Source: Macrostomum lignano (taxonomy: Eukaryota). Taken from it: 64,000 nt of DNA. Under the pieces are notes generated by a model. That model saw only the letters and a list, made by a program, of their open reading frames with translations, had not been told where the DNA came from and made no database searches. This document shows, piece after piece, positions 3,166 through 61,687 of this stretch. The stretch covers positions 1 through 64,000 of the forward strand of contig NIVC01000493.1 of the NCBI GenBank assembly GCA_002269645.1, read 5' to 3'. Position 1 is the stretch's first letter. Every line of letters starts with the position of its first letter. Position numbers and translations under genes: made by a program.

Positions 3166-4462
3166 GTTTCAGTTTTGTGCAAAAATTTTGGTTTATTAGC
3201 AGACCTTGAGCACGCACTCACACAGACTCACACGGCCTGTGAGGCCGTACATCCGCACCGCATCCAATGCATTTGAATGCTGACAATTTAGGCTAGGGCT
3301 GGTAGGGTTAGTGCTTCGGTTACGGTCCGCAGTCGGGTCAGAGGAGCTCTGCGGTAAAGGCGTCTGACTCTCAGGCCGCGACCACATTAAAGTTGTCATG
3401 CAGGCTGCCAGACCGTGTTAGCAGACCGTGTTGTCTGCCAAGGTTGATTGGCCCGTCAAAGCGAGACGCCTTGATGCTGCATCGACGACTTCATCGGTGC
3501 CCAGTCGGCTCAACAGTCTTTACCGGAGGTGCTGCTGCTGACGCTGCAGGCACTCAACTGCCTACTGGTTTAAAAGTACAGGCGCGCCCAGAACTTTAGG
3601 CGCTCCTTTGTTTTGATTTTTATGCCGGCTTCAAGTTAGACTCATCAAAGATTGAGATGACGGAGAAGCTGGCCCCATAAGAGCGCAGAAACTCCTAAAC
3701 AGGGTCATTTAGTATTGCCATTTCAGAACAGATTGCTGGAGATGTCTAAATATATGACCATGCGATTCGTAGACCTCACCCAGCTACGAGCCATCTCGAA
3801 TTTCCTGAAAAAATCTTTTATCAATTTTTAAACGATATTTTGATTGCGACTGCTCACCCCACCCCCTGCTGGAGGCTGAGGATCAGGTTTTTAACAAAGC
3901 ATACTTCAAGATCAGATTTCGACTCGATAATATTATAATAAAAAATGGCAAGGAAGCCTCACAGATGTTGACGAATAATTTAACTCAACCTTCTCAAACC
4001 TAACAGACCTGAGTATTTATTAATAGGACTCCAATCAGGATACTCTGGCTTCGAATCAGTGTTCGTGTTTAGCGTTCAGTTGCCTGATTAAAAGACATCC
4101 TGCGCCCGCTGTTTGCCTTTCTCCGCCTTCTCTTTAAGCTCGTGTCTCTAAATTCCCAGGCAATATCCTTTATCCCGTGCCACAGGTAGCTACGCGTTAT
4201 CATCACATTCCGTGTCCAGATATTTATTCCAGCCAGGACGACTTGAGTAGGAGAAATGGGAAACTTCGTTTCTTGGAAAACGAATTGCATCAATTGCAAT
4301 GCCATTCAGTTTGCGGCAGGCAAGTGTCGTAGACCATTGACACAGCATCAGCATGATTATGTAATCAAGCCCTGCATCATTTATTAAAATAGTTTCTAAG
4401 GGAAAATATTAAATATTAAAAGGATTTCTACAAGTGCAGATCAATTAAAAACCGCTGCTCAC

Positions 4463-4681
4463 ATCCTCGTGTCCGGGCAGCTGCAGCTGATCCTGCATCA
4501 GGCGCATCCGTTTCGTTCTTCGGCATTCGGCGCTGCAACGTCGAGCCTCCGGCGCCTTCGCAGCGCCGATAGCGCCGCGCCGGCAAAGCCAGGCGCCCAG
4601 ACGGGTAGCCAGAAGAGTCTCGCGCAGCTCCCGGTGCACCTCAGCATTCACGAAGCAGTAGAGCAGGGCTACCAGGAAGCC
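4463..4681 (-). CDS. GPCR exon: TM7-helix 8 and proximal tail
   Basis: GFLVALLYCFVNAEVHRELRE...GHED followed by a GTGAG donor. Confidence 0.92.
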
Positions 4682-7600
4682 CTGGGTTGTTAAGAATGGA
4701 TTATCAAGATTTCTAAGAATTATTTGCTTTCCTTAATGCTATTCAGCTTCACTGAATAGGTTTCGATTCAGTAGCTACCTGAAATGAGCTGAAAAAGTGC
4801 TCGTAGTAGAGTCGGACAAACTCCAGTTTCGCTCCGAGACGGTCTTTCGGGATCATAGCCACGGGTAGGAAGATCAGGTAGTAGATCCCGAATACCAGCA
4901 CAAGCACTGATGTGGACTTCCACAACTTTCTGCAATCGATGGAATGGTATTGTCTTCTGTATGCTCCCAAGCCATCCACTCCCTGCCCCGCTATCCAACA
5001 CCCTCCGTTTTACGGCCACTCCCTGCCCCGCTATCCAACACCCTCCGTTTTACGGCCACTCCCTGCCCCGCTATCCAACACCCTCCGTTTTACGGCCACT
5101 CCCTGCCCCGCTATCCAACACCCTCCGTTTTACGGCCACTCCCTGCCCCCTCTTTTCAAGACCCCTCAGTTTTGTAGCCACTCCCTACCCCCTCTTTCCA
5201 ACAGCCCTCAGTTTTACAGCCACTTCCTACCTCCTCTTTTCAAGACCCCTCAGTTTTGTAGCCACTCCCTACCCCCTCTTTTCAAGACCCCTCAGTTTTG
5301 TAGCCACTCCCTACCCCCTATTTCCAACACCCCTCAGTTTTACGGCCACTCCCTACCCCCTCTTTCCAACACCCCTCAGTTTTACAGCCACTCCCTACCT
5401 CCTCTTTTCAAGACCCCTCAGTTTTGTAGCGACTCCCTACCCCCTCTTTTCAAGACCCCTCAGTTTTGTAGCCACTCCCTACCCCCTCTTTCCAACACCC
5501 CTCAGTTTTGTAGCCACTCCCTACCCCCTCTTTCCAACACCCCTCAGTTTTACAGCCACTCCCTACCTCCTCTTTTCAAGACCCCTCAGTTTTGTAGCCA
5601 CTCCCTACCCCCTCTTTCCAACACCCCTCAGTTTTGTAGCCACTCCCTACCCCCTCTTTCCAACACCCCTCAGTTTTGTAGTCACTCCCGCCCCTCCATC
5701 CAACACCCCTCAGTTTTACAGCCACCTCACTCCCTGCTTCAACACTTTACTCAGAGTTTCTTTTAATCCTTAATTAAAAGTGCATTAGTAGAAGCTCGAG
5801 AGCGAGGCACGAACCTATAAGTCTGCGTAGCTTCCATAGCTGCTGTTTGCAGTCTTAATTTTTTGAAAATTTCTCGAACAATTCGAACAAATAACACTGC
5901 GTTCACCTGAAAAAGACAACAGAAAAATGAAAATGAAAATGAATGTCCGGTATAGTGTTCTTGATAACAATACGAGTATTTGCAGCAGGATAATCCAAAT
6001 TTGTTTTGCTCCTGTAAGAGTCCTGTTCTTATTTCTGCTTATCTAAGTTTCTGAACTTTCTACAACGTAACGGTGAAGACGTCTGATATCTCGCCACGAC
6101 CTTGGTTCGATTCCGAGTGCCAACACCTTCATTTGGAGCTCGTGCATGAATAATTGGCCAGGAGGGTTTGTACGAGTAGTCGTAGTGCGATTCAAACCCA
6201 TGAGGGCGAGCCCCCAAGACAGTGAAGTGTACATGCCTGATGATTAGAAAGTCAGGGCTGCTGTACACCCTGTGTGAGCGTGTGCATGAGTGCGCGCCCG
6301 CGTACAGTATTGGTGCGCCTGTATGTTCTCAGGAGTCAGCGGAATGGGCAGAATTGCTTCAGCACTGGCTGGCCTGCAGCCCTCCTGGCAACATTTATGA
6401 ATTTTAATCAACTCCCCGAACAAACTAACAAGGTATTTAACTGACTGGCTCTGCTCACCAGAACCAGCACGCAAAGGTAGGAGTTGATCAGCCAGATGTC
6501 CGCTCCGAGAGGCCTGAACTGTCTCCAACAGTCGCGGTTGTCAAAAAGAATTCGCAGCAGTATCCAGACTGCCGTGATGCACGCTGACGCACCTATTAGT
6601 GAGGCCGTTTTAGGGAGGAGGCATGAAATAGTGCTTGGCCTGGATTCTGCCAGGGCAGCACTGCCAAGGCTCTATAAAAATCCAGTCAGTAGAACTCCTA
6701 AAAAGGGATCTTAATACCCTGTTAGCCTCAATAGCTATTAATTCGGTTTCTTTATCCGTTTATCTAATCCTCGGATTTTCTTCGAAAGGAGACTTTCGAA
6801 TCGATGCCTCAAAGAGGAAATTACGTGTGCTTATTGAGAAGGAGAAAATTCTGGAGTAAATTAGGAAATTGAGCCAACCCGGCTTAAACTGACACGTTAA
6901 ATGTGAATAGAAGCCGAGGATCTGTGAAGCTGAGGATCTGTGAAGCCGAGGATCTGTGAAGCTGAGGATCTGTGAAGCTGAGGATCTGTGAAGCTGAGGA
7001 TCTGTGAAGCTGAGGATCTGTGAATCTGAGGATCTTTGAAACTGAGGATATGTAAAATGAACTCTAATCAAATTCAAGGCATTGTGAAATATTGTTATCG
7101 TGGAAGTTGGCAGCTCACCCCAGCCCAGAACAGCGTAGGTCTTTGTTGACCTTGTCTTGTGCGACAGCGCACTGACAAAGATTAGCGAGTGCAGGTGCAA
7201 AGCCTCAACAAAGACCCAGGTGAAGCTGCTAACTACAGCAAAGGTCATCGCTGATTGGTCCGCCCGGCAGGCCAGCATCTGAAAACAGCAGTTCGTTTTA
7301 GGTTTTATTCAAATATGAAATTAGTCAAGTCCACTGAGCTAAACTAGAGACTGGCTGAAAATGACAGCTTTTTATAGCTCGTATGTACGAGCGTATTCCC
7401 GATCTACATATTCTCCGCCCGCTGCCATAGACAGCACTCTCCACATTCTCCGCCCGCTGCCATAGACAGCACTCTCCACATTCTCCGCCCGCTGCCATAG
7501 ACAGCACTCTCCACATTCTCCGCCCGCTGCCATAGACAGCACTCTCCACATTCTCCGCCCGCTGCCATAGACAGCACTCTCCACATTCTCCGCCCGCTGC

Positions 7601-10600
7601 CATAGACAGCACTCTCCATATTCTCCGCCCGCTGCCATAGACAGCACTCTCCACATTCTCCGCCCGCTGCCATAGACAGCACTCTCCACATTCTCCGCCC
7701 GCTGCCATAGACAGCACTCTCCACATTCTCCGCCCGCTGCCATAGACAGCACTCTCCACATTCTCCGCCCGCTGCCATAGACAGCACTCTTCATATTCTC
7801 CGCCCGCTGCCATAGACAGCACTCTCTATATTCTCCGCCCGCTGCCATAGACAGCACTCTCCATATTCTCCGCCCGCTGCCATAGACAGCACTCTCCATA
7901 TTCTCCGCCCGCTGCCATAGACAGCACTCTCCATATTCTCCGCCCGCTGCCATAGACAGCACTCTCCTCATTCTCCGCCCGCTGCCATAGACAGCACTCT
8001 CCACATTCTCCGCCCGCTGCCATAGACAGCACTCTTCATATTCTCCGCCCGCTGCCATAGACAGCACTCTCCACATTCTCCGCCCGCTGCCATAGACAGC
8101 ACTCTCCACATTCTCCGCCAGCTGCCATAGACAGCACTCTCCACATTCTCCGCCAGCTGCCATAGACAGCACTCTCCTCATTCTCCGCCCGCTGCCATAG
8201 ACAGCACTCTCCACATTCTCCGCCAGCTGCCATAGACAGCACTCTCCACATTCTCCGCCCGCTGCCATAGACAGCACTCTCCACATTCTCCGCCCGCTGC
8301 CATAGACAGCACTCTCCACATTCTCCGCCCGCTGCCATAGACAGCACTCTCCACATTCTCCGCCCGCTGCCATAGACAGCACTCTCCATATTCTCCGATG
8401 GTGGTGTGAATAAAAAAATCGATTAAAGTTAAATTTTTTCAGATCAACACAGTGTGAAAGGCATTCCAGCTTGCTTCATTTGCTATTCGGTTATCTGGGT
8501 ATCGGTAGAGAAATTTTCATTTTGCCAGTAATAAACCTAAGAATTGCTATCTCGGTAATTGCATTCGGGGCAGAATATTCATGTTATTATCACCAATTGC
8601 ACAGTGCAATGTCCTGTCTGCATATTCGTAGAAAAATTAGCAATCCAATGCGAGCGAGCTATCTGAGAGCTTTTGAGACAAGGCGACCCGCAGCTAGCGA
8701 CGAGGCGGGCAGGCATATGCCCACCCGCAGACCACTGAGCACTTACACTGCACGGGCACGCGCAGGCGCACGCTGGGTGTACAGGGGACCTGACTTGCCT
8801 CTGCACCTTAAGAGATTGGCCCTAGCCTGACGATTAGCTTCACGCAAAGGTCTGTACACCTGTGCAGAATCGAACCCCGGACTTTGGCGCTCCGCTGCCT
8901 TATAATACTACATGCGTTTTAAGTGGCTATAAGTAGCTGTAATGTGCTGTAAGTGGCAAGTGCTGTAACTGAATTTAAGGTGCTGTAAGTGGCTGTAACG
9001 TGCTGTAAGTGGTTGTAAGTGGCTGTAAGTGGCTGTAAGTGGCTGTAAGTGGCTGTAAGCGGCTGTAAGTGGCTGTAAGTGGCTGTAAGTGGCTGTAAGC
9101 GGCTGTAAGTGGCTGTAAGCGGCTGTAAGTGGCTGTAAGTGGCTGTAAGTGGCTGTAAGCGGCTGTAAGTGGCTGTAAGTGGCTATAAGTGGCTGTAAGC
9201 GGCTGTAAGTGGCTGTAAGTGGCTGAAAGTGGCTGTAAGCGGCTATAAGTGGCTGTAAGTGGCTATAAGTGGCTGTAAGTGGCTGTAAGTGGCTGTAAGT
9301 GGCTGTAAGTGGCTGTAAGCAGCTGTAAGTGGCTTAGTGCATCTCCGCTAGTATTTCTTGCTCAGCAAACAGTCAATGGGAAGTTATTTATTCACCTGGC
9401 CATCCAGCGGAGCGAGCTTGTTCACGAAGTACCTGCCAGCTCGAAGGCTGAACGCGGCGAACAGGTTCACGTGAATAGCATTTCGCTGGCAGTGCAGCCG
9501 TCTGCAAGGCAAAAGTATTGCTGCGATGAAGATTAGCAGTTGATTATCTATCGTAACTGCACACACGCTGCCACCTGAACAAATAAATCGGAAAGCAGAA
9601 CTCGAAAGCAATTTCTTCTACTGCCTTCTCTGCTCCCGGGAGAGCTTAAGAAGACACAACAACAGCTTGCAGTCTGATCGCACCTGAAAGCGGCCAAAAT
9701 GCAGATGGCCGTCAGCAGCGAAGCCAACGACAGGCCGAAGCCGGCGAACCCGATGCCGTCCAGAATGGTGATGTGCATCTGCGGCGTTTCATGGGAGCAT
9801 TAAACTGTTTTACACGAGTGACACTGTTTACATGTGTCACTCACATCTGCCCTATGTGCCACTCACATCTGTCCTATGTGTCACTCACATCTGCCCTATG
9901 TGTCACTCACATCTGCCCTATGTGTCACTCACATCTGCTTTATGTGTCACTCACATCTACTTTATGTGTCACCCACATTCTGTCCTATGTCACTCACATC
10001 TGCCCTATGTGTCACTCATATCTGCCCTATGTGTCACTCACATCTGCCCTATGTGTCACTCATATCTGCCCTATGTGTCACTCACATCTGCCCTATGTGT
10101 CACTCACATCTGCTTTATGTGTCACTCACATCTACTTTATGTGTCACCCACATTCTGTCCTATGTGTCACTCATATTCTGTCCTATGTGTCACTCACATT
10201 CTGTCCATGTGTCACTCAAATCTGTTATATGTGTCACTCGCATCTATTATATGTGTCACTCTCACCTGCATCATGTGACTAACCGAGCACCTCTTCAGCC
10301 TCATCTGCTCTCAGCGCTCCGCCGCAGCTCACCTTAATCCACTCAGAGCCGGCCGGCATCTTCACCGGTGCCGGCTCGATGAGGCATTCGCTAAAGTTGG
10401 TCCAGCCGCCGCCGCCGGCACCGCCGCTGTCGTCAACGTCATCGCCGTCAAACTCGGTTGGCCTTCGCTGCCAGACGCCTCGGTCGGTGCACAGCCGGCT
10501 GGCGCGCCGATGGCGCAGGACGTCGTTCAAATAGTCGGGGCAAGGCGCCGAGACCCTGGCGCCGGCCTCCGCGCTCGGCCAGCAGACGGCGACATCGAAC

Positions 10601-13112
10601 TCGGGCGGGCAGCGCGGCCAGGCGGCCGAGACGGATTCGTTCCGCTCGGATCGGCCTCCAATCGAGAACTCGGCCACTCGGCGACGGCAGATCAGCCTCT
10701 CCAGCAGCAATCGCTGGCGCTGCGTGCTGTTGGAGATGCTGGTCCGGCGCATCTGCAGTTGTTGGGTTTGGAGTTTTGGAGGGCGGATTTGGAGTTTTGG
10801 AGGGTGGATTTGGAGTTTTGGAGGGCGGATTTGGAGTTTTAGAAGGCGTATTTGGAGTTTGAAGGGCGGATTTGGAGTTTTAGAGAGCGGATTTGAAGTT
10901 TAAGAGGGCGGATTTGGAGTTTTAGAGGGCGGATTTGGAGTTTTAGAGGGCGGATTTGGAGTTTTAGAGGGCGGATTTGGAGTTTTAGAGGGCGGATTTG
11001 GAGTTTTAGAGGGCGGATTTGGAGTTTAAGAGGGCGGATTTGGAGTTTTAGAAGGCGGATTTGGAGTTTTAGAGAGCGGGTTTGGAGTTTTAGAGAGCGG
11101 GTTTGGACTTTTGGAGCGGATTTGGAGTTGTGGAGAGCGGATTTGGAGTTGTGGAGAGCGGATTTGGAGTTTAAGAGGGCGGATTTGGAGTTTAAGAGGG
11201 CGGATTTGGAGTTTTAGAAAGTGGATTTGGAGTTTAAGAGGGCGGATTTGGAGTTTAAGAGGGCGGATTTGGAGTTTTAGAAAGTGGATTTGGAGTTTAA
11301 GAGGGCGGATTTGGAGTTTTGGAGAGCGGGTTTGGAGTTTTAGAGGGCGGATTTGGAGTTTTAGAGAGCGGGTTTGGAGTTTTAGAGAGCGGGTTTGGAG
11401 TTTTAAAGGGCGGATTTGGAGTTTTAGACAGTGGGTTTGGAGTTTAAGAGGGTGGAGTTGGAGTTTTAGAGGGCGGATTGGAAGTTTAACAGGGCGGATT
11501 GTTGAGTAGAGGAGAGCGAATTGCAAATTTCGAAGCGAATTTGAATTTTGCTTTTTGTGATGCCATTAGAGTAGCTCTAGGAATTCTGAGAAAGAGAACT
11601 TTTAGAAAGCAAAGCAGTCACCGGTCTTCCACTAAATCAACCGCTTTCTATAACTGCAAAGGTACTACGCTCGTAATTAGTAGTTGCCAGGTATACTCGT
11701 AGGAGAATTGTGACGATCTGTCATTTTATTACTAGCATATATTAGTTTCCTTTCTAATTTCCGAATGCTGACAAGCATTCAGTGAATTATTTCCTTCGAC
11801 TATGTCAATGCTACTGCCATTCTAGTATTGAGACATTTAATCTGTGCCCAGGTTATTAATCTGGGTGTGGGGTTTTGTCAGGCGAGCACAAGGTGAGCAG
11901 GTGGGCAGGGCACATGTGATCCTGGATTGCGTGCTCAGGACAGATCGCGGCTCCTCTGCACATAGTAGCCTGATTGCGTATATTAGAAAAGATGAGGTGT
12001 GGCAGGGAGTGAGGTGGGGCAGGGAGTGAGGTGGGGCAGGGAGTGAGGTGTGGCAGGGAGTGAGGGGGGCAGGGAGTGAGGTGTGGCAGGGAGTGAGGTG
12101 TGGAAGGGAGTGAGGGGGGCAGGGAGTGAGGTGGGGCAGGGAGTGAGGTGTGGCAGGGAGTGAGGTGGGGCAGGGAGTGAGGTGTGGCAGGGAGTGAGGT
12201 GGGGCAGGGAGTGAGGTGTGGCAGGGAGTGAGGTGGGGCAGGGAGTGAGGTGTGGAAGGGAGTGAGGGGGGCAGGGAGTGAAGTGGGGCAGGGAGTGAGG
12301 TGTGGCAGGGAGTGAGGTGGGGCAGGGAGTGAGGTGTGGCAGGGAGTGAGGGGGGCAGGGAGTGAGGTGGGGCAGGGAGTGAGGTGTGGAAGGGAGTGAG
12401 GGGGGCAGGGAGTGAGGTGGGGCAGGGAGTGAGGTGTGGCAGGGAGTGAGGTGGGGCAGGGAGTGAGGTGTGGCAGGGAGTGAGGTGGGGCAGGGAGTGA
12501 GGTGTGGAAGGGAGTGAGGGGAGCAGGGAGTGAAGTGGGGCAGGGAGTGAGGTGTGGCAGGGAGTGAGGTGTGGCAGGGAGTGAGGTGGGGCAGGGAGTG
12601 AAGTGGGGCAGGGAATGAGGTGGGGCAGGGAGTGAGGTGGGGAGGGAGTGAGGAAGAAGAGAGGCGAATGAAGTAAGGGGAAATTAGCGGATGTAGCAGG
12701 GAGTGGGGAGCTGTATTCAGCAGCTTCTCACCTCCTCAACAACTTGAGCAAAGATTTTCTTATCCTTCGGTTTGCATTCGGTCAAGTCGGTAACCGCTTC
12801 GACGACGGCCGCCTTGCTGTCGCTGCCGTTGACAGTCGCGGGGGGAGGCCCGGGTGGGCATTGGCGCCAGGCCGACGCGGTGCCGTTGCCGCTGAAGAGG
12901 CTGGGCGGGCAGGCCGCTGCCATTTCGGCGCCGCTTCGGAGCGGCGGCCAGCAGAGGAGGCCGTCGAAGCTGCCGGGGCAGTCGGGGAGGTTGTCGGAGC
13001 GCCAGTCGTCGAGGCGTCGCTCCAGCAGCGACATCTGGCAGGCGGCTTCGACGTCGCGCAGTTCGTCGATGATTTGAAGGACTGCATCAGCTGCATCTGT
13101 GTCGGCTGCGGC
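4463..13112 (-). CDS. Family-B1 (secretin/PTH-receptor-like) GPCR with two tandem hormone-binding domains; gene span, with 5' and 3' ends unresolved
   Basis: Exons on the minus strand: 13112-12732, 10752-10333, 9778-9684, 9501-9396, 7278-7119, 6592-6459, 5906-5815, 4929-4779, 4681-4463. All have GT-AG boundaries and compatible phases, giving 586 open codons. Family motifs: RRLHCQRNAIHVNLF, WVFVEALHLH, LGWG, VNAVLF..IVR, YRKLWKSTSVLV..FG, FQGFLVALLYCFVNAEV. Confidence 0.93.
4779..4929 (-). CDS. GPCR exon: TM6-ECL3-TM7
   Basis: RKLWKSTSVLVLVFGIYYLIF...YYEHFFSSFQ; phase 2-0. Confidence 0.92.
4975..5745. repeat. Minisatellite with ~40-41-bp unit (GPCR intron)
   Basis: CCACTCCCT(G/A)CCCC...CAACACCCCTCAGTTTT tandem units. 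Confidence 0.95.
5815..5906 (-). CDS. GPCR exon: TM5-ICL3
   Basis: VNAVLFVRIVREIFKKLRLQTAAMEATQTY(R); strong polypyrimidine acceptor; phase 0-2. Confidence 0.9.
6060..6305 (+). mobile_element. tRNA-derived SINE, family 2, copy 1
   Basis: B-box GGTTCGATTCC near 6103 and shared core AGTCAGGGCTGCTGTACACCCTGTGTGAGCGTG near 6250. Confidence 0.65.
6459..6592 (-). CDS. GPCR exon: TM4-ECL2-TM5
   Basis: GASACITAVWILLRILFDNRDCWRQFRPLGADIWLINSYLCVLVL, containing the ECL2 CW motif; phase 1-0. Confidence 0.88.
6918..7050. repeat. Minisatellite, 16-bp unit GCTGAGGATCTGTGAA
   Basis: About 8 tandem copies. Confidence 0.9.
7119..7278 (-). CDS. GPCR exon: TM3-ICL2-TM4
   Basis: LACRADQSAMTFAVVSSFTWVFVEALHLHSLIF...YAVLGW(G); the C-x16-W spacing matches family B. 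Confidence 0.92.
7408..8396. repeat. Minisatellite, 35-bp unit TTCTCCGCCCGCTGCCATAGACAGCACTCTCCACA
   Basis: About 28 tandem copies. Confidence 0.97.
8735..8900 (-). mobile_element. tRNA-derived SINE, family 2, copy 2
   Basis: Antisense B-box GCAGAATCGAACCCC and core GCTGGGTGTACAGGGGACCTGACT. Confidence 0.6.
8935..9330. repeat. 10-bp tandem repeat AAGTGGCTGT
   Basis: Visible tandem array. Confidence 0.95.
9396..9501 (-). CDS. GPCR exon: ICL1-TM2
   Basis: RLHCQRNAIHVNLFAAFSLRAGRYFVNKLAPLDGQ; phase 2-0. Confidence 0.92.
9684..9778 (-). CDS. GPCR exon: TM1
   Basis: MHITILDGIGFAGFGLSLASLLTAICILAAF(R); phase 0-2. Confidence 0.9.
9832..10275. repeat. Minisatellite, 22-bp unit TGTGTCACTCACATCTGCCCTA
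   Basis: Visible tandem array. Confidence 0.95.
10333..10752 (-). CDS. GPCR exon: hormone-binding domain 2 (canonical)
   Basis: LIC...RCPPEFDVAVCWP...APCPDYL...RLCTDRGVW...WTNFSEC. ctgcag acceptor and GTGAG donor; phase 0-0. Confidence 0.92.
10768..11490. repeat. Minisatellite, 21-bp unit TTGGAGTTTTAGAGGGCGGAT
   Basis: Begins ~15 nt from the ECD2 exon acceptor. Confidence 0.95.
11995..12650. repeat. G-rich minisatellite, 17-bp unit GGGAGTGAGGTG(G/T)GGCA
   Basis: Visible tandem array. Confidence 0.95.
12732..13112 (-). CDS. GPCR exon: hormone-binding domain 1 (divergent)
   Basis: AAC...DCPGSFDGLLCWPP...AACP...RQC...DLTEC gives six Cys. ttcag acceptor and GTGAG donor; phase 0-0. Confidence 0.85.
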
Positions 13113-16010: not shown

Positions 16011-16407
16011 AGCGCATGTTAGAGTTTGGGTTAGGGCGATAAAACTATGGGCGACAGAGAGGAGAGGGTGGCCAAAACAACGGAAAAAGCCGGTTAGCAT
16101 TGAGGCAAAGTAGGGTGCTTAATAAATTCCTATAATTTTGGCACTCAAAATTCTAAATCTGAAAGAGCCGCGTCACTTACACTGACAGCATCGGATGCCG
16201 CAACCAGATAGATGACGCAGTGGATGGCTGCTCGAAAATTCATGTCGAACAAATTTCCCCAGACTTGGCTGGAAGTTCTCTTGCCGGCAGTGGGCGGAAG
16301 GAGAAAAAGATACGTTAAATACACTTGTTGAAGTGCTCGGGTTCGAGGACCAATAGAAACCGACTCGAATTGAGATTGGCCGACTGCCAGAGCTGGGGAT
16401 GCCAGCT

Positions 16408-17010: not shown

Positions 17011-17267
17011 GCCCCGCCAATGGTCTTTCACAATTTGCAGAATGCCACTGATCTCGAATGTCTTTCCCTGCAGTGGCTTGTAGTTGCCGCGTACACAAGT
17101 ACAAAAACACAAAGGGATTAACTCTGTCCTGCTAATTAATGAGAAATACTTCCCGGCAGCGGCTGTTCAAGCATTAATAAGGGAGATTCGTTGACAAAAG
17201 GCACGAAGGAGTGCAGGCGATCAGCTCACTGAGCAGTGCCCGACACAGCTCTTTCTGCCTTCCCTAC

Positions 17268-17428
17268 CTCGCCGCTGACTTTCATAGCTTGCAAGAGTCC
17301 TCCTAAATCATTAGTGCAGCTCATCGGTGAGCCGCCTGCCTGCTGGAGATAAGCGGCTTTGAGTACCCGCCGCTCTGCCGCTCTGAGCACTTCATCAACT
17401 GCTCTGGCGGGACCGAGTCTGCCGGAAC
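17268..17428 (-). CDS. Candidate upstream exon of the GPCR
   Basis: Open frame GSGRLGPARAVDEVLRAAERRVLKAAYLQQAGGSPMSCTNDLGGLLQAMKVSGE. It ends in phase 0 at a GTAGGG donor, compatible with the exon at 13112. No family motif. Confidence 0.3.
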
Positions 17429-17445
17429 CTGACTCTGACGCATTC

Positions 17446-17905
17446 AGTCTACTCCACCTAGTCTACTCTACTCCACCTAGTCTACTCTACTCCACCTAGT
17501 CTACTCTACTCCACCTAGTCTACTCTACTCCACCTAGTCTACTCTACTCCACCTAGTCTACTCTACTCCACCTAGTCTATTCTACTCCACCTAGTCTACT
17601 CTACTCCACCTATTCTACTCTACTCCACCTAGTCTACTCTACTCCACCTAGTCTACTCTACTCCACCTAGTCTACTCTACTCCACCTAGTCTACTCTACT
17701 CCACCTAGCCTACTCTACTCCACCTAGTCTACTCTACTCCACCTAGTCTACTCTACTCCACCTAGTCTACTCTACTCCACCTAGTCTACTCTACTCCACC
17801 TAGTCTACTCTACTCCACCTAGTCTACTCTACTCCACCTAGTCTACTCTACCCCACCCAGTCTACTCTACTCTACCCAGTCTGCTCTACTCTACCCAGTC
17901 TACTC
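17446..17905. repeat. Minisatellite, 19-bp unit AGTCTACTCTACTCCACCT
   Basis: Visible tandem array. Confidence 0.95.
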
Positions 17906-46789: not shown

Positions 46790-49700
46790 CTGCAATTTAA
46801 CAGTGATGGAATAGTATTTTTGCTATTCACCGGTTCAGCCTCGCTATTCACCGGTTCAGCCTAGCTATTCACAGGTTCAGCCTCATTATTCACCGGTTCA
46901 GCCTCACTATTAACCAGTTCAGCCTCATTATTCACCGGTTCAGCCTCATTATTCACCGGTTCAGCCTCACTATTCACCAGTTCAGCCTCATTATTCACCG
47001 GTTCAGCCTCACTATTCACCGGTTCAGCCTCACTATTCACCAGTTCAGCCTCGCTATTCACCGCTTCAGCCTCGCTATTCACCAGTTCAGCCTCGCTATT
47101 CACCGGTTCAGCCTCACTATTCACCGGTTCAGCCTCATTATTCACCGGTTTAGCCTCACTATTCACCGGTTCAGCCTCACTATTCACCGGTTCAGCCTCG
47201 CTATTCACCGGTTCAGCCTCATTATTCACCAGTTCAGCCTCATTATTCACCGGTTCAGCCTCACTATTCACCAGTTCAGCCTCATTATTCACCGGTTCAG
47301 CCTCACTATTCACCGGTTCAGCCTCACTATTCACCAGTTCAGCCTGGCTATTCACCGGTTCAGCTTGGCTATTCACCGGTTCAGCCTCATTATTCACCGG
47401 TTCAGCCTTGCTATTCACAGGTTCAGCCTCACTATTCACCGGTTCAGCCTCGCTATTCACCGGTTCAGCCTGGCTATTCACCGGTTCAGCCTCACTATTC
47501 ACCAGTTCAGCCTGGCTATTCACCAGTTCAGCCTGGCTATTCACCAGTTCAGCCTGGCTATTCACCAGTTCAGCCTGGCTATTCACCAGTTCAGCCTGGC
47601 TATTCACCAGTTCAGCCTGGCTATTCACCAGTTCAGCCGCACTTAAAAACAAAACAGCCAATTAGACGATATATAGAAAACCAGCCGAAGCGAAAAGCAA
47701 TCAGACCAACCTTAATAGCGGCGCAGATGGCAGCCAGGGTCAGCGGTACGCGGGCCAGGTAAGACTGCCGAGCGGGCGTCATGCGCACAATAGAATAGAT
47801 GAACGCGCCGGAGACAGCACCACCCAGGGCCCAGTTTCGCACCAGATCGCGGCCGCCCTGCAGCTGCGAGCTGATTGACACGGTGCCAGCGTGTAGCAGA
47901 GAGGCCATGATGCCGCCAGCCCACGAGTACGCTAGTAACGGGATGGGTTGGCTAAGCCAGTGTGAGATTTCCTTACACTACCATTGTTTCATTATTAATT
48001 AGTTCATTTTTAAAGGAAGCATGAAGATTACATGAAGTCTTTAGTTAAGGATGAAGATTACCTGAAGTCTTTAGGGAAGGATGAGAATTGCCTGAAGTCT
48101 TTAGGAAAGGATGCAGATTACCTGAAGTCTTTAGGGAAGGATGAAGATTGCCTGAAGTCTTTAGGGAAGGATGAAGATTACCTGAAGTCTTTAGGGAAGG
48201 ATGGGGATTGCCTGAAGTCTTTAGGGAAGGATGAGGATTGCCTGAAGTCTTTAGGGAAGGATGAGGATTGCCTGAAGTCTTTAGGGAAGGATGAAGATTA
48301 CCTGAAGTCTTTAGGGAAGGATGGGGATTGCCTGAAGTCTTTAGGGAAGGATGAGGATTGCCTGAAGTCTTTAGGGAAGGATGAGGATTGCCTGAAGTCT
48401 TTAGGGAAGGATGAAGATTACCTGAAGTCTTTAGGGAAGGATGAGGATTGCCTGAAGTCTTTAGGGAAGGATGAAGATTACATGAAGTCTTTAGGGAAGG
48501 ATGAGGATTGCCTGAAGTCTTTAGGGAAGGATGAGGATTGCCTGAAGTCTTTAGGGAAGGATGAGGATTGCCTGAAGTCTTTAGGGAAGGATGAAGATTA
48601 CCTGAAGTCTTTAGGGAAGGATGAGGATTGCCTGAAGTCTTTAGGGAAGGATGAAGATTACATGAAGTCTTTAGGGAAGGATGAGGATTGCCTGAAATCT
48701 TTAGGGAAGGATGAGGATTACCTGAAGTCTTTAGGAAAGGATGAAGATTACCTGAAGTCTTTAGGGAAGGATGCAGATTACCTGAAGTCTTTAGGGAAGG
48801 ATGCAGATTACCTGAAGTCTAACTTTGGGAAGGACGCAGATTACCTGAAGTCTTTTGGGAAGGACGCAGATTACCTGAATTCTAATTTAGGGAAGGATGC
48901 AGATTACCTGAAGTCTAATTTAGGGAAGGATGCAGATTACACACTGAAGTCTAATTTAGGGAAGGATGAAGATTACCTGAAGTCTAATTTAGGGAAGGAC
49001 GCAGATTACCTGAAGTCTAATTTAGGGAAGGATGAAGATTACCTGAAGTCTAATTTAGGGAAGGATGCAGATTACCTGAAGTCTTTTGGGAAGGACGCAG
49101 TTTACCTGAAGTCTTTTGGGAAGGATGCAGATTACCTGAAGTCTTTAGGGAAGGATGAAGATTACCTGAAGTCTAATTTAGGGAAGGATGCAGATTACCT
49201 GAAGTCTAACTTTGGGAAGGACGCAGATTACCTGAAGTCTTTTGGGAAGGACGCAGATTACCTGAAGTCTAATTTAGGGAAGGATGCAGATTACCTGAAG
49301 TCTATTTTAGGGAAGGACGCAGATTACCTGAAGTCTAATTTAGGGAAGGATGCAGATTACCTGAAGTCTAATTTAGGGAAGGATGCAGATTACCTGAAGT
49401 CTAATTTAGGGAAGGATGCAGATTACACACTGAAGTCTAATTTAGGGAAGGATGAAGATTACCTGAAGTCTAATTTAGGGAAGGACGCAGATTACCTGAA
49501 GTCTAATTTAGGGAAGGATGAAGATTACCTGAAGTCTAATTTAGGGAAGGATGCAGATTACCTGAAGTCTAACTTTGGGAAGGACGCAGATTACCTGAAG
49601 TCTTTTGGGAAGGATGAAGATTGCCTGAAGTCTAATTTAGGGAAGGATGCAGATTACCTGAAGTCTAACTTTGGGAAGGACGCAGATTACCTGAAGTCTT

Positions 49701-51460
49701 TTGGGAAGGACGCAGATTACCTGAAGTCTAACTTTGGGAAGGACGCAGATTACCTGAAGTCTTTTGGGAAGGACGCAGATTACCTGAAGTCTAATTTAGG
49801 GAAGGATGCAGATTACCTGAAGTCTAATTTAGGGAAGGATGCAGATTACCTGAAGTCTTTTGGGAAGGACGCAGATTACCTGAAGTCTTTTGGGAAGGAT
49901 GCAGATTACCTGAAGTCTTTTGGGAAGGACACAGATTACCTGAAGTCTTTTGGGAAGGATGAAGATTGCCTGAAGTCTTTAGGGAAGGATGAAGATTGCC
50001 TGAAGTCTTTAGGGAAGGATGAAGATTACCTGAAGTCTAATTTAGGGAAGGATGCAGATTACCTGAAGTCTAACTTTGGGAAGGACGCAGATTACCTGAA
50101 GTCTTTTGGGAAGGACGCAGATTACCTGAAGTCTTTTGGGAAGGACGCAGATTACCTGAAGTCTAATTTAGGGAAGGATGCAGATTACCTGAAGTCTAAT
50201 TTAGGGAAGGATGCAGATTACCTGAAGTCTATTTTAGGGAAGGATGCAGATTACCTGAAGTCTTTTGGGAAGGATGCAGATTACCTGAAGTCTTTAGGGA
50301 AGGATGAAGATTACCTGAAGTCTAATTTAGGGAAGGATGCAGATTACCTGAAGTCTAACTTTGGGAAGGACGCAGATTACCTGAAGTCTTTTGGGAAGGA
50401 CGCAGATTACCTGAAGTCTTTTGGGAAGGACGCAGATTACCTGAAGTCTAATTTAGGGAAGGATGCAGATTACCTGAAGTCTTTTGGGAAGGATGCAGAT
50501 TACCTGAAGTCTATTTTAGGGAAGGACGCAGATTACCTGAAGTCTTTTGGAAAGGATGCAGATTACCTGAAGTCTATTTTAGGGAAGGATGCAGATTACC
50601 TGAAGTCTATTTTAGGGAAGGATGCAGATTACCTGAAGTCTAATTTAGGGAAGGACGCAGATTACCTGAAGTGTTATTTAGGGAAGGATGCAGATTACCT
50701 GAAGTCTAATTTAGGGAAGGATGCAGATTACCTGAAGTCTAATTTAGGGAAGGATGAAGATTACCTGAAGTCTAATTTAGGGAAGGATGAAGATTACCTG
50801 AAGTCTAATTTAGGGAAGGACGCAGATTACCTGAAGTCTAATTTAGGGAAGGATGAAGATTACCTGAAGTCTAATTTAGGGAAGGATGCAGATTACCTGA
50901 AGTCTTTTGGGAAGGACGCAGATTAACTGAAGTCTTTTGGGAAGGATGCAGATTACCTGAAGTCTTTTGGGAAGGACACAGATTACCTGAAGTCTTTTGG
51001 GAAGGATGAAGATTGCCTGAAGTCTTTAGGGAAGGATGAAGATTGCCTGAAGTCTTTAGGGAAGGATGAAGATTGCCTGAAGTCTTTAGGGAAGAATGTA
51101 GATTGCCTGAAGTCATTGAATCTAAACAAATCCCTTTTAAAACTGTTTAAAAGCACTCTTAACTACCAAATGCAATCAAGATGCATGAAAATTCTCACCA
51201 ATCTTATAAATTGGTTCCCATCTGCTAGGAAACTTCGGATTGCGACCAAAAGTAGCCAAGTGAAAAATGCCAACCGTAACGCCGAGCGAGCCGCCAACCC
51301 GAACGGCGAGATCTGCCCGCTTCATGAAGTCTTTGTCGCCGTCTTTCAAGTACACGTACTTGTACATGCTGGGGCTCGGTCTGGACCCAACATTGCGAAC
51401 AAATTTTCCATTGACCATGACAGGGTCATCAATGATCTTTTCGTTGCCATTGTAGGCCAT
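46640..51460 (-). CDS. NDUFA11: NDUFA11-like (Tim17/22/23 family) complex I accessory subunit, three exons, ~210 aa
   Basis: Exons 51460-51199, 47931-47711 and 46789-46640 are in phase. DGDKDFMKRADLAVRVGGSLG...ISSQLQGGRDLVRNWALGGAVSG...AAICAAIK resembles the NDUFA11 pattern (PDGxDC.., ISAHVR..DDPLNYFLGGCAGG, AASLVK), recalled from memory. Confidence 0.75.
46822..47637. repeat. 21-bp tandem repeat CTATTCACC(G/A)GTTCAGCCTCA in NDUFA11-like intron 2
   Basis: Visible. Confidence 0.95.
47711..47931 (-). CDS. NDUFA11: NDUFA11-like exon 2
   Basis: AYSWAGGIMASLLHAGTVSISSQLQGGRDLVRNWALGGAVSGAFIYSIVRMTPARQSYLARVPLTLAAICAAIK. Confidence 0.8.
48030..51118 (+). repeat. 30/33/36-bp tandem repeat in NDUFA11-like intron 1, containing a 964-codon ORF (48032-50926)
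   Basis: Units CTGAAGTCT(AAT)TTAGGGAAGGATGCAGATTAC, roughly 90 within the ORF. Confidence 0.95.
51199..51460 (-). CDS. NDUFA11: NDUFA11-like exon 1
   Basis: ATG at 51460; GTGAGA donor in phase 1. Confidence 0.78.
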
Positions 51461-53929: not shown

Positions 53930-56900
53930 GTAGAGAACAGATATTCCATCCAGATGTCCCACATTGGGGGGCGAAAATTGCTAGTAGTTATACTCATTTT
54001 AATGTTTAATTTAAGCTATTATTTAATTGAAAGGGCCATGCTATTGATTTAATATCTACCAAATTCAAAACAAATTGATATTAAAAACTGTTTTATTTTT
54101 TAAATAGCTGTTGAATCTTAAAAGATGGCAAAAATATTGTATATTGTGATATCAAACATTTGACACAAATAACCAAAAATAGTCTTACTTAACATATCTA
54201 TTTTTTTGCATAAAAAACTGCTACGTTTGCTAAAATTTACCACCTTTAATTCACCATTTTGACCTTCTGTTGTTTTGTTTAGACCTCCATATTGTGGACC
54301 CCATATTGTTATGTACTAGAAAAAACAGTTTTAAAGATTTATTACAAATACAAATCTGGTTTAAACTAGTTGAAAATGCCTAGAGCAGCTTTGCCTAGCC
54401 TTTGGCAATAGTACAACTTAGAAAACAACCATTGTACACTGGTTTGCCAAATTTTGTCAATGCCAAGCATTATTTAAAGACATAAAGCCAAGCTGGACAA
54501 GCACAAAGCTCAACAACTGATGATCCATGAACAATGGTTCAACAGTTAGCCACTGCTATTGGCATTTCATCAGGAAGTATATCAACCATTCTGCATAAAA
54601 AGCTTGGGCTAAGCAAAGTGTCTGCCTATGAAGCACTTCTTTACCTAATTGAGGAGCAGAAGCAAGTTCAAGTTGATTGGTGCCAAGCCCAGCTAGACAG
54701 ATTTGATGAAGGTAGGTTAGCAAGCACCTGGGAGGTCATGGTCATTAGTAAAGATGAGACTCAGGTGTAAAGCTTCAACCTCAAAAGTAAATAGCAGTTG
54801 TTGCAACAGGCCCCTGTAGGAAACAGCCTACCTTCAAAATTGGCCTTGTCACCACGTAGATAATGGCTGATTTTTTGCTTGTAGCACTCTAGTAGCAGTT
54901 ATTCTATAATAGAAACACAGCAAAAAGTGACTGACGACTGGTATGTGATATTATATCTACCACAGGTGCAACAAGCTATTGTTGAGAGATGCCCAAAGAT
55001 GCATTGGGGGCTCCTATTCTATCAGGACAATGCCTTGACCTAAATAGCTCAATAAACTATTGAGTTTATATAGTAGAATCAATATCTAGATATTTTAGCA
55101 TCCACTCTATAGCCTTGTACAACTTCTTTGTCTTTCCTTGGGTCAAGTATCTATTCAAAGGAGTTTGATTTGAGTCACCAGAACTGGCTATTATGGTATT
55201 TTGGAATAATATGCATATTTAATCATATTAATAGAATACAAATAAATCTAAAGACACTAAAACACTATACTAATATAGTAAAAATATATATACATACTAT
55301 TATATTATTTAATAATAAAAATGATATAAGCAAGCTTTATATAAATATTTTACTTTTTATGTATAATAACATATGCTTTAAAAATATGCACTTTGAATTT
55401 GAATAAATTAAATCAATATGGAACGTTACTTATTGGCTGGGAAAGGTATTGCTAAATAGATAGAAGTTGAAATACTATACTATAATTTTGATTTTTTGCA
55501 TTATAAATATGAATTATATGGATATAAATCAAAACAGTCACATATAGGATAGCTGCCAAACAACAAAATGGCCCCATATAATTTTTTGTTGTTATGCTGA
55601 TGCACAAATTATCTGCAATGGCATAGCTCATTAGTAGGCATTTAATGTATGTTTTGTTATTATTATAACTATTTAACCTTACAAGTTGGACATAATTTGT
55701 GTATAAAATACATTTTGATATAGCTCAGTATGATAATTTTTGCAGAAATAGCAGAATTAAATGTTTCTATATATATAAAGTGTTACACAATTCATTCAAA
55801 TTGACATTCTAACATTCCAATAAAATTATTAGAAAGTTCTAAATTGCAATTGTAAATAAACAAAAAATTGAACAAAAAAACTAAAAATAAAACAGAAATA
55901 AAATGAAACAAAAGAAAACAGAAGTTTATAACAACACTATTTTTAAATTAAAAGCATATTTTAGTTTTTTCGCAGCTTTTTCTGTTCTGCTGAAGCCGTA
56001 CTTGTACTATGAGCTTTGCGCTTCCTGGCAGCTTGAAGTAATACCTGTTGGGCTTTGCACCAGTGATGTAAACGCAGGCGTGTATACAAAGATGAGAGAG
56101 ATGAATAAAGAAATTTATTTGGAGTGGCTAAAAGGGGTATAAATCTAAGGAATGCAGGCAACTAAGCTGAGTTATTATATACTAGGCATCAAATAGATAG
56201 GATATATAGACAGAAAGACAAGCGAAAAACATAGTCTATGGCAAAATAAATCTCAATACATTCAGGTTGATGAAAAAAGCCAGCACTACTCACAAATCAC
56301 TTTACCTTAGAAGTAGCATAGCTAGCAAACAGTTTTTGCCTCAAAATTTTTTTGCAGGGACCTTGATTGAGCATTCTGGTGTATTCTGTGGTTATAATGA
56401 ACTATTTCTAGAAAGACTTTTAAATGATTATAAAATTGAAGAACTATTAAAAGACTGTCAATAAAATTATTTTAACAGGAATAATGTTATTGATAATATT
56501 TTAAAGCTAACTTTCTAAGTGTTTTTAAAGTTTTTGTTGTAGCCATTTTTGTTTGAATATAAGTCAATATTACCCTTTCTTTCATTGCTTAAGAACTGTA
56601 AAATGCCCAAGGGCAAGGCAAAGGATATTAGGTAATAAATAGACTTGGTATCATAGTTAATAAAATAGGTAGGACATGGATTGTATCAGTCATTTACTTC
56701 AGAGCAATATATATTCATCAAAATATGCTTTTTTAATAATCATAAAATATAATATACTAAACAAACATAAAGAGTAGGCCTACCCTACCATTCAAATTAT
56801 GTAATAGGCCTACCCATTTCTATTTTGGTACTTTTTAAGTCAATACTTAAAATGGCCCTTTCAATTAAATAATAGCTTAAATTAAACATTAAAATGAGTA

Positions 56901-56961
56901 TAACTACTAGCAATTTTCGCCCCCCAATGTGGGACATCTGGATGGAATATCTGTTCTCTAC
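53930..56961. repeat. Pair of ~125-135-bp inverted repeats ~3 kb apart (53930-54065 and 56825-56961)
   Basis: GTAGAGAACAGATATTCCATCCAGATGTCCCACATTGGGGGGCGAAAATTGCTAGTAG... is a near-perfect reverse complement of 56850-56961. Confidence 0.88.
54420..55165 (+). mobile_element. Degraded mariner transposase remnant
   Basis: QQLATAIGISSGSISTILHKKLGLSKVSA (HTH, normally followed by RWVP), LDRF...SKDETQV (first catalytic D region) and LLFYQDNA (second D); many stop codons. Confidence 0.85.
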
Positions 56962-59900
56962 TTATTGGTTTGACCTAGCTAGATATTATGCATATATATT
57001 AGTAAGCCTATTTATTTAAAGTAAATTACTTAAAACTTAAATTCCAAACAATTATAAATTGGTATTTTTCAAGGCAAATATTATTATTACAATGACTATA
57101 TAAATAGCAAGACAGTTATTTTTATGGTCAACACTTAATACAAATACCATCTAAATAAAGTGATAAACTTGCTATGCAAATACTAGGATGGTTAAATTTA
57201 AAAAAAAAGAAACATGTTATTAATAAATACAATGATATCTTCTAGTGGTTCTTGTCATGGTAGCTTACTTTATGCAATTGTTAACTTTTACAAGGGGTGT
57301 CCAAAAAGTAATGATACTTTTAACCGTAGCTCTCATTCTATAGCTTCCTGTGATTTAAAATTTTATGAACTGATAGCGGCAAATCTCTTCTACAGACTGC
57401 TTTTTGAATTTTTAAAATTGATACTAGAGAACAAAAGTTATACCCACAAAAGTAACAGTACCTGTACCATAGAGTTACACAAACTATATTGAAATTTATA
57501 ATAGTTGACTTCTGCACTCATTCATTAAGAAGGCATCGATAAATGTCTTATTTAAGCAATACTAAAGCCCAATTGCAAAATGATGCTCACTGTGACTGAC
57601 TAAAATTTGTCTATGGATGGAATCATGCGCAGAAAAATAAAGCATTTAATTCATTACTTTACTTGCAAACAAAGGAGCTTGCATTTTGCGATTCATTCAT
57701 GAGTTCATTGCCCATACTCAACAACACACATGGATGTGCACTCAGTTGTTGCTCAGCAAAGTACCATCTTCACTCCTTGGGATGCTGGCCATAGTGTCTC
57801 AGAAATTCACGCAAAACTTTGCTCTGTGTAGGGATTCTCTGCAGTCAGCAAAATGACAGTTTATCGATGGATGGAGCAGTTCAGCAAAGGAAGGACTGAC
57901 TTGGTAGATCAGCATTGGACAGGGCAGCCATACGTTCATAAACCTAATCTACTGGTGGACTCCATTTTGAATTTTCTTGACGAGGACTCCCAAATGACCA
58001 TTAAAGAGATTGCCGACAGGTTGGACAAGCCAAAATCAACAATTCATTGAAGCTTACTTGGCATGGATCTTGTGAAGCTCAGCCTATAATTTGTGTAACT
58101 CTATCTATGGTATATATACTGTTACTTTTATGGGTATAACTTTTGTTCTCTGGTATCAATTTTTAAAAATTCAAAAAGCAGTTTATAGAAGAGATTTGCT
58201 GCTATCAGTTCATAAAATTTTAAATCACAGGAAGCTATAAAATGAGAGCTATGGTTAAAAGTATCACTACTTTTTGAAGACCCCTTGTACATTATAATTA
58301 AACTGAAATTTTTTATATGACTATAAAAATAGCCTATTTGCTTCCTACCTATAGTGACTATAAAATAACAGTTTTGCTATTTATACAGTTATATTAAGTA
58401 CAGACCATAGGCCCAGATAGTGTCTTATACATTAACTATAAAAATAACTGTTTTGTTATTTATATATGGTCACCATAATAATAACAACTGCCATTTTTCA
58501 AAAGTGAAAAGACAAACCCATTTTGCATTTATTAATTTAAGTCAATTAAGGTATTGAAATGCAACTAAGATTAGAATAAGCTCAGCTGTTTAAAAGTCAT
58601 AATATTTTTTTGGAATCAGATTATAAAAGTTATATATTATGACATGTTAATATTAGGCCTAATGCCTAAATATTAAGTCTCTGAAGCATAGCATCTAGAA
58701 TCTAAATTATGTGTAGGTTATGTGTGCATCTAAAGAAACTTGGAGCTTTTAAAATAGGACTTCATTGTATTTGTATGAACAGAACATACCAAGCATTTTT
58801 GCTATAGCCATAGGCCTAGTTTAGAATAGCTATTGTACATTGATTAGGCCTAGAGTATTATTGCTATTAGGGTTCTCTTATAGTTTTGCATAGGCCTATT
58901 AAATTTTTGGTTTCAACCTACTTTGGCGAAAGAATTTTCGGCGAAAGTCAATAACGGAGAAAAATACTTTCGCAATGACCATTTTGTTTAAAGCTGACCA
59001 TTTCGGCGAAAATTTTATTCCAAGCTTCGCTGAAGAGTTTTTTGTTTTAGAAGAAAGTTAAAAAAGACGACGAACTTAAAAAAGACTAATTTTATCGTGA
59101 CATGATTTTGTTTTGTCGCAATTTAATTTAGTTGTTTTATTAGATGCCCTTCGAATATGGCGGAATTTCAAAGTACGATTTTAGGAGCCTGCCACGGGAT
59201 TTAATCTGAAAAACCGCACCGTCATCATCCCTAATCTATCGACTGCATATCGATAGATCGCATGTACATAACATAGCTACGAGCTAAGTCATGAGTTTTT
59301 TAATTTTCTAACTGCAAATAATTTGCAGCAATGAACAATTTAGGCCTATTAAAAGCTTCAATCACCAAAGTGGTATATTTGCAATATAATACGTAGCCCA
59401 TATTTTCGCCGAACTGGTCACTTTCTTTCGCCGAAATGTACATCTATTGAAACTTAAAATTCACTTTCGCTGAAGCGTCTTTTGCCGAAAATTCCTTCGT
59501 CGAAATAAGCTGCACCCAAATTTTTTTGTTATAAATAATAAATTTTGAGTAACTTTAAGCAAAGTAAGTAGTAGAATAGTCAATAATAGAAAACAAACAT
59601 AAAATGTCATTGAGTGCCTACTTTGTTTAACTGTGATGTTCTTTACATTCATGTAAAGCTACCCAACCATGCCATTATAATTCATCTTTTGAACCTAGTA
59701 GACTTGATTGTTCACACAAATAACATACTATTGAAGACACATGGGCTCTTCATTGGTAAGACACGTGAAGACCAGAGCGCGGTCTAATTTTGACAGTTAA
59801 GTGCAGAAAAATCATAATTTTGTAAATATTGAAAATATAAGCCTGAAAATTTACATATAAAAAGCAAAGTTTAATGCCCGCATATTTTGACAAAAAAAAA

Positions 59901-60912: not shown

Positions 60913-61687
60913 CTTTTTAAAAGAAAAGTTAAGGCATAGCTACATAGCTAGCAAAGCTTATTTTTAACAATTAAATATTGCAAGTCATGCAAATAAAGTT
61001 AAAGAGGGATGTCAGCTTTTCCAAATATAATTTTGTTTACACTATACGCTATATATTTTTTGTTATTTTATTGTTTACGCTATATTTTGTTTACCCTATA
61101 TCTAATGTGATGCTTCTTGTATATTTTATACAACTCTTATTTTTTGATACATTTTTTCCTTGATATGACACTTCTTTAAGTTTTATATAATAATTCTTTG
61201 TTTGATATGACTCTTCTTTATATCAAATATGACATTTCCTTTACATTTGACATGATGCTTTTGTTTTTTAATGATAGTTCTTTATGTTTAATATAAAACA
61301 TTTTTTGTTTGACATAATGCTTTTTTATGCCTTTTTGATGCTTTTTCAAAAGCTTTGATCAAATTCCTGATGCTTATAAAAGCTTTCATTCTTATAATAA
61401 CTAATGTATATTATATAATTTGTTATGATTAACATTATTGTCATTGCCATATAACCATTTCTAAATATTGAATATTTAAAATAAAAACTGGCTAAACCTA
61501 TTTTAGTAAAACTATGTCATTTTGTTAAAGGTTTTCTATAAGTGAGTTAATTCAATAAAGGGTTTCTCTTGCAACATAATAGAGAAAAAATAAGAGCTAA
61601 TATATTTAGAAAGTTAGAAGATTCTTAATGCTTGTTTCAGGCACTTTTTAATTAGGCAACTTGAAATAAACATATATTTCAAGTCAC

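Follow-up and report, generated by a model that had tools for sequence, protein, structure and literature searches.

The locus examined here raises the question of whether a single class-B1 G protein-coupled receptor (GPCR) gene can carry two complete hormone-binding ectodomains (ECDs) in series, and how these would be used. It lies on the minus strand of contig NIVC01000493.1, positions 1 to 64,000; this whole stretch of 64,000 nucleotides (nt) is called the window below. Class-B1 receptors are a textbook case in which one ectodomain traps the peptide and the seven-transmembrane (7TM) core is activated. The initial annotation had proposed two consecutive exons in the window, each encoding a complete six-cysteine ECD. 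We found that this is one class-B1 GPCR gene with two HRM ectodomains, each on its own exon, before one 7TM core. Both ectodomains are probably joined in one product.

The distal domain, ECD1, is encoded by exon A (12732..13112, minus strand; 381 nt, 127 codons), and the membrane-proximal domain, ECD2, by exon B (10333..10752, minus strand; 420 nt, 140 codons). Exon A is bordered by the acceptor ...TTCACATTCAG before its first base G and by the donor GAG/GTGAGA, and exon B by the acceptor ...CAACTGCAG before its first base A and by the donor AAG/GTGAGC. The intron between them (10753..12731, minus strand) has 1979 nt, mostly occupied by two minisatellite arrays. Both exons are symmetric (phase 0-0) and multiples of three, as the initial annotation had noted. 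Omission of either one leaves the frame intact, and the variants translate cleanly. The locus has neighbouring paralogous exons of the same phase, each encoding a complete ectodomain with its own helix and tail.

We scanned all 1420 open frames of the window, each of at least 25 residues, in six frames on both strands, with hidden Markov models (HMMs). The scan detected two pieces of HRM, no more and no fewer, and a single 7TM set in seven pieces, all on the minus strand. ECD1 therefore does not begin another receptor gene next to this one. The possibility of two adjacent receptor genes was ruled out by this single 7TM set. The same scan detected no 7TM or HRM coding piece in the inter-ECD intron.

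Both exons were matched with Pfam HRM (PF02793) where the initial annotation had placed them. ECD2 alone gave 57.2 bits (E=2.3e-15), and ECD1 alone gave 28.5 bits (E=2.1e-6) over profile positions 4-45 only, with a cut-off of 26.2. Judged from these sequence matches, the HRM likeness of both exons is far beyond chance. The product of exon A reads AAADTDAADAVLQIIDELRDVEAAC...CPGSFDGLLCWPP...ACPPS...AWRQCPPGPPPATV...TDLTECKPKDKKIFAQVVEE, and that of exon B reads MRRTSISNSTQRQRLLLERLIC...CPPEFDVAVCWPS...PCPDYL...LCTDRGVWQ...GGWTNFSECLIEPAPVKMPAGSEWIK. Each ECD has six Cys, and the spacing of C2-C3, C3-C4 and C4-C5 is the same in both (9, 14 and 17 residues). The motifs FD..CWP and CP are present in both. 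The tails after Cys6 are similar in length, 14 and 17 residues, respectively. The two domains are 24% identical.

ECD2 has all class-B1 ectodomain hallmarks, including GVW and WTNFSEC, so its description as canonical is confirmed. ECD1 has the six Cys, the Asp, CW and CP but lacks GxW: a Pro-rich stretch, CPPGPPP, stands where C..G.W is expected, as was first noticed in the initial annotation. After Cys5, none of the frames of exon A has a TGG codon, which means that the loss of Gly-x-Trp is real and not a frameshift artefact. Between its GVW and WTNF motifs ECD2 also carries an acidic and Gly-rich insertion, EFDGDDVDDSGGAGGGG (residues ~227-241 of the model without signal peptide), which is absent from the M. 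lignano protein described below.

Downstream of ECD2, seven exons from 9778 to 4445 on the minus strand have GT-AG borders throughout and can be joined in frame to a complete seven-helix core. They were defined by this in-frame joining together with the 7TM HMM scan. The TM1 exon (MHITILDGIGFAGFGLSLASLLTAICILAAF-R) is at 9684..9778 and ends in phase 2, and the TM2 exon (RLHCQRNAIHVNLFAAFSLRA...) is at 9396..9501. The exon of TM3 and the start of TM4 (CRADQ...FTWVFVEALHLHSLIFV...LGWG) is at 7119..7278, followed by one for TM4 and the start of TM5 (6459..6592) and one for the end of TM5 and intracellular loop 3 (5815..5906). The TM6 exon (KLWKSTSVLVLVFGIYYLIFLP...FFSSFQ) is at 4779..4929. The last exon (4445..4681) encodes TM7 and the C-terminal tail, with the stop codon at its end. 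The joined model was matched with Pfam 7tm_2 (PF00002) at 177.6 bits over profile positions 7-250 of 250, in addition to the two HRM stretches. The assignment to family B1 is thereby borne out.

The start of the gene is different from that first suggested. The initial annotation had joined an upstream exon to exon A by the junction 17268>13112. The protein would then start with MSCTNDLGGLLQAMKVSGE, without a signal peptide, and this junction is probably wrong or untranslated. The exon ending at 17268 was rejected as the coding start since it encodes no signal peptide; the piece at 17229-17462 on the minus strand may be a 5' untranslated exon or no exon at all. We scanned upstream ATG-to-GT candidates in phase 0 and compared them by hydrophobic stretch and donor. 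A better candidate for the first coding exon is probably at 16181..16243 on the minus strand, which would encode a signal peptide (MNFRAAIHCVIYLVAASDAVS). Its ATG is the first of its open frame, its hydrophobic core has a hydropathy of 2.28, and its donor (AGT/GTAAGT, phase 0) scores 7 of 9. None of the upstream phase-0 candidates with a stronger hydrophobic stretch also had a better donor. With this exon as the start, all four junctions, of signal peptide, ECD1, ECD2 and TM1, would be in phase 0.

A protein search with the whole model gave three matches, none of them from the species of the window gene. Two of these, an Owenia protein and one encoded on a Logan contig, are PTHR-like and have a single ECD. 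The remaining match was A0A1I8IK20 (P0001) of Macrostomum lignano, with 93% query coverage and 36-45% identity, which has two HRM domains in collinear order. We also searched 1.84 billion representatives with a profile built from two double ectodomains, that of the window and that of A0A1I8IK20. The only end-to-end match was A0A1I8IK20 itself (E=7e-138), and the next match was at 2.6e-21. When the double ectodomain of M. lignano was used as query, nothing turned up except a frameshifted copy of this receptor from M. lignano, A0A1I8F7Q2 (P0049), which is misnamed 'Cytochrome b561 domain-containing protein'. The M. lignano proteins were also looked up on contigs, with no match.

A0A1I8IK20 has the order HRM-HRM-7tm_2 as in the window gene and is annotated merely as 'G_PROTEIN_RECEP_F2_4 domain-containing protein'. 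No functional study of it was found in our literature searches. The public model is defective, with TM1 and TM4 missing and an in-frame insert before TM7. The two proteins have in common an unusually short extracellular loop 1, a helix EELR..EAAC before Cys1 of ECD1 and a near-identical TM6 (KLWKSTSVLV.VFGIYYLIFLP). They differ in that ECD1 of A0A1I8IK20 retains GxW (DGRW), whereas ECD1 of the window gene does not. Because the identity is only 36-45%, A0A1I8IK20 appears to come from a different, fairly distant species, or to be a paralogue of the window gene. Judged by this nearest receptor homologue, the window is probably flatworm DNA.

The age of the duplication was judged from pairwise scores. 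We compared ECD1 with single HRM domains to find its origin, but over 161 domains the BLAST scores differed too little for a meaningful domain tree, so reciprocal pairwise scores were used in its place. ECD1 of the window gene scored 120 against ECD1 of A0A1I8IK20, 79 against ECD2 of that protein and 58 against ECD2 of its own gene. ECD2 of the window gene scored 175 against ECD2 of A0A1I8IK20 and 66 against its ECD1. The ECD1-ECD1 pair is 33% identical, with z=15.9 above shuffles. These reciprocal best matches, ECD1 with ECD1 and ECD2 with ECD2, mean that the duplication is older than the split of the species of the window gene and of A0A1I8IK20. That ECD1 has kept its likeness while the whole proteins are only 36-45% identical points to purifying selection on ECD1 and counts against a dead pseudo-exon. 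So the duplication is old, and ECD1 has been kept by selection.

Both ECDs fold as class-B ectodomains in AlphaFold, the modelling check proposed in the initial annotation. ECD1 alone, modelled with an alignment of 43 HRM domains, had a mean predicted local distance difference test (pLDDT) of 85.4; its N-terminal helix was long, and the strands were as expected. The Pro-rich loop had lower confidence (pLDDT ~50-60 as block means, and below 50 at residues 94-100). When this model was compared with the PDB by Foldseek, all 50 of the 50 matches listed were class-B GPCR ectodomains or receptors, GHRHR, PAC1R, PTH1R, GLP1R and CLR among these. Since the model was built on an HRM-domain alignment, this result means fold compatibility and not independent proof. 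The two-domain model had a pLDDT of 77.5 with each domain folded. The link between them was formed by two helices, 118-130 (the tail of ECD1) and 135-164 (the N-terminal helix of ECD2). The core of ECD2 was at 80-90, its insertion at 227-241 was below 50, and the PPGPPP loop was also low.

To which subfamily does the gene belong? The closest PDB sequences were PTH1R (the top 14, ~196-200 bits), then GIPR and VIPR1 (~170-172) and GCGR (~164), and no calcitonin-type receptor was among the best 60 PDB matches. PTH1R was the best sequence match for both the 7TM core and ECD2, and ECD2 aligned to the PTH1R ectodomain with 73 bits. The two-domain binding mechanism would also be alike. The ectodomain of human PTH1R is divided among several exons, whereas each ectodomain of the window gene is on a single exon. 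From 37-38 full 7TM regions we calculated a neighbour-joining tree with 100 bootstraps. The neighbours of the window gene were PTHR-like or 'cluster B' proteins, including those of Owenia, PTH1R of lamprey and hagfish, a mollusc 'PTH/PTHrP receptor' and a 'secretin receptor-like' protein. In this phylogeny, of a kind that the initial annotation had called for, the calcitonin-type and PDF-receptor clade left the window gene out in 98 of 100 bootstraps, but a grouping with vertebrate PTHR appeared in only 21%. Protostome 'cluster B' comprises PTHR/GCGR/SCTR-like receptors (Cardoso et al. 2014, PMC3961327). On sequence grounds we class the window gene as PTHR-like, or 'cluster B' in the sense of that paper, and as no more than a possible PTHR orthologue. 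PTH1R, PTH2R and the protostome 'cluster B' receptors have one ectodomain, whereas the window gene has two.

Tandem HRM ectodomains as such are not new and already occur in fish and arthropods, so the caution about novelty in the initial annotation was justified. The profile search also found class-B1 proteins with multiple HRM domains before one 7tm_2 core. The calcitonin/CGRP-type receptor of the damselfish Stegastes partitus (XP_008287491; P0004) has four HRM stretches with 251.6 bits in total. Proteins named 'CGRP type 1 receptor-like' with two HRM domains were found in Ischnura (damselfly), Penaeus (shrimp), Centruroides (scorpion), Cloeon (mayfly), Nymphon and Pycnogonum (sea spiders) and Trichonephila (spider). 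Isoforms of a 'PDF receptor' with two HRM domains were found in the fly Condylostylus. There were also two-HRM Logan contigs of 1.0-2.4 kb, which are perhaps transcripts. In 2007 Nag et al. reportedly cloned and described a pufferfish calcitonin receptor that has four hormone-binding domains (Gen Comp Endocrinol 154:48, a reference cited in PMC6283891). Our full-text literature searches on two HRM or hormone-binding domains gave nothing relevant, and duplicated ectodomains are not mentioned in the mollusc and arthropod/nematode family-B surveys consulted.

The fish receptor resembles the window gene in having HRM domains in series before one class-B1 7tm_2 core, but it belongs to the calcitonin/CGRP subfamily, has four domains against two, and is of independent origin. 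The arthropod receptors, including that of Condylostylus, have the order HRM-HRM-7tm_2 with a more divergent distal domain; they differ in their separate 7TM clade (98% bootstrap), in the distal GxW tryptophan, which they keep, and in their longer linkers. In every tandem receptor found the distal domain was the weaker HRM match. The GxW tryptophan in the distal domain was kept in 12 of the 12 other aligned tandem receptors, M. lignano included. The gene structure differs too: in Cloeon each HRM domain is spread across about three exons, while the window gene has a single exon per ectodomain. In Cloeon dipterum CADEPI010000076.1 (L001 3001-6232), the duplication was of a block of exons and not of a single exon. 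Common descent with the fish and arthropod tandem-HRM receptors was not found, as the window gene lies outside their clade in 98 of 100 bootstraps. Because those proteins belong to another 7TM clade, the tandem layout of the window type arose independently. The window gene is therefore a new, independently evolved tandem-HRM class-B1 receptor with an uncharacterised public counterpart.

How are the two exons used? We consider it probable that both are constitutively included, with ECD2 as the peptide clamp and ECD1 as a divergent accessory domain. Evidence from other gene models, indirect as it is, favours such co-inclusion over alternative exons: the M. lignano model has both domains in one predicted product, and tandem HRMs stand in single RefSeq models and in the 1.0-2.4 kb Logan contigs of other animals. 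Two GT-AG exons 2 kb apart, under default splicing, would also be joined. The main competing idea is that the two exons form an alternative splicing module, as cassette or mutually exclusive exons, which would put ECD1, ECD2 or both on one 7TM core and so switch ligand specificity or affinity. We regard this as possible but rather unlikely. From the signal-peptide exon through to TM1 all junctions are in phase 0, both skip variants are intact, and each ECD exon brings an N-terminal helix of its own, the six Cys and, after Cys6, a tail comparable in length to the stalk of PTH1R. The pyrimidine tract of the ECD2 acceptor is also weak. Against these points, the 1979-nt intron gives no steric block to joint use, and the exons are of unequal length and too little alike for a typical mutually exclusive pair. 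An ECD1-only form would lack the core tryptophan, and the domains stand together in the M. lignano model as in every other tandem-HRM protein found. No feature that enforces mutual exclusivity (short intron, competing RNA pairing or incompatible splice sites) was seen at the locus, where all sites are GT-AG. We looked for docking/selector RNA pairing for exclusive splicing and found nothing convincing; there were short imperfect inverted repeats only, five pairs with 79-93% complementarity. Improbable also, in our judgement, is a splice-selectable ligand-recognition module in the strong sense, with ECD1, ECD2 or both giving different peptide specificity, or a tandem form to which two ligand molecules bind, or else a bivalent ligand or co-factor.

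In another reading, ECD1 would be a decaying relic of the duplication, unspliced or inert, and the working receptor would effectively have ECD2 only. The borderline and partial Pfam match of ECD1, the tryptophan lost in this ECD1 and kept in 12 other distal domains, and the poorly modelled Pro-rich loop are in line with such decay. But the 381-nt frame is open with a consensus AG and GTGAGA at its borders, and ECD1 has kept, at exact spacing, its six Cys as well as the Asp, the Trp of CW and the Pro of CP. ECD1 is also closer to ECD1 of M. lignano than to any ECD2, and neutral DNA would not retain such likeness, so we hold a relic to be quite improbable. Still less credible is an artefact of the gene model, in which exon A would belong to a separate upstream unit, such as a secreted single-HRM decoy ending in the following intron. 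Read-through of the ECD1 donor would meet a stop after four codons (VRSC and stop), and a short secreted product of signal peptide and ECD1 is conceivable. The ECD1 donor is strong, though, no polyadenylation signal is evident just downstream of the ECD1 exon, the window has neither a 7TM set apart from that of the receptor nor any other partner exon, and the predicted M. lignano product has the order ECD1-ECD2 too.

For the tandem receptor with both ECDs included, we propose the following history and mechanism. An old duplication of one symmetric exon encoding a whole ectodomain would have given ECD1 and ECD2, and both exons would normally be spliced into one mRNA. The product would have the order signal peptide, ECD1, a linker of ~35 residues that is mostly helix in the model, ECD2, stalk and 7TM core. 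Since ECD2 has the complete hallmark residues and the usual distance from TM1, we assign to it the putative role of affinity trap for the C-terminal helix of a peptide ligand. The N-terminus of the ligand would then activate the 7TM core, as the standard two-domain model has it for class-B1 receptors. ECD1 may give the ligand, or a partner protein, an additional point of contact, or it may influence how accessible ECD2 is. As it has no Gly-x-Trp tryptophan, it is likely weaker as a canonical peptide clamp.

Several points weigh against this reading. The Pfam score of ECD1 is barely above the cut-off (28.5 vs 26.2), and it is the sole distal domain without the GxW tryptophan among 13 aligned tandem receptors; ECD1 could be losing function. 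A0A1I8IK20 is a prediction with defects (no TM1, no TM4 and the in-frame insert before TM7). The position as sister to lamprey, hagfish and bird PTH1R is on a long branch and was recovered in 21% of bootstraps, so the PTHR assignment is soft. Co-inclusion is argued from gene models and by analogy, and the all-phase-0 junctions with the similar tails of 14 and 17 residues make single-ECD isoforms mechanically possible.

The locus is rich in minisatellites. The two arrays in the inter-ECD intron are at 10767-11500 (21-mer) and 11993-12653 (17-mer). Between 4976 and 24000 nearly every intron of the receptor gene has its own minisatellite with a differing unit (periods 10-42, 9-77 copies). There are about 30 minisatellite arrays over the 64 kb, with a strong strand bias and a plus-strand GC skew of up to +0.57 at 12-14 kb. 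It means that the receptor pre-mRNA is C-rich and G-poor. On the plus strand, a 30-bp unit repeated about 99 times at 48015-51114 gives a 964-codon open frame (LKSLGKDEDY...), which is apparently an artefact of the repeat and not a gene. A neighbouring synaptotagmin-like gene at 238-1851 on the minus strand encodes a hydrophobic anchor and two stretches of C2 domain (Pfam C2, 82 bits). As no homologue came up when its first C2 region was the query of a word-index search, the lineage seems to be poorly sampled. From about 54000 to 62000 the GC content falls abruptly to 27-33%, compared with ~39-58% elsewhere, and there are no long open frames. No matches to Rfam families or tRNAs were found in the window.

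The finding reveals no new kind of receptor or mechanism, and its relevance is for specialists of receptor evolution. Receptors with extra ectodomains test the one-ectodomain model of class B1, and the role of the distal domains is seemingly little known. If a tandem form binding two ligands, or a bivalent ligand or co-factor, were true, it would be a mode of binding unlike that of any characterised class-B1 receptor. What the distal domain does could be tested in M. lignano, a flatworm that is tractable in the laboratory. In the PTH-receptor-like branch the tandem layout had an origin of its own and persisted long enough to be common to two divergent species. It means that multi-ectodomain receptors are a recurrent solution and not a one-off of the calcitonin receptors.

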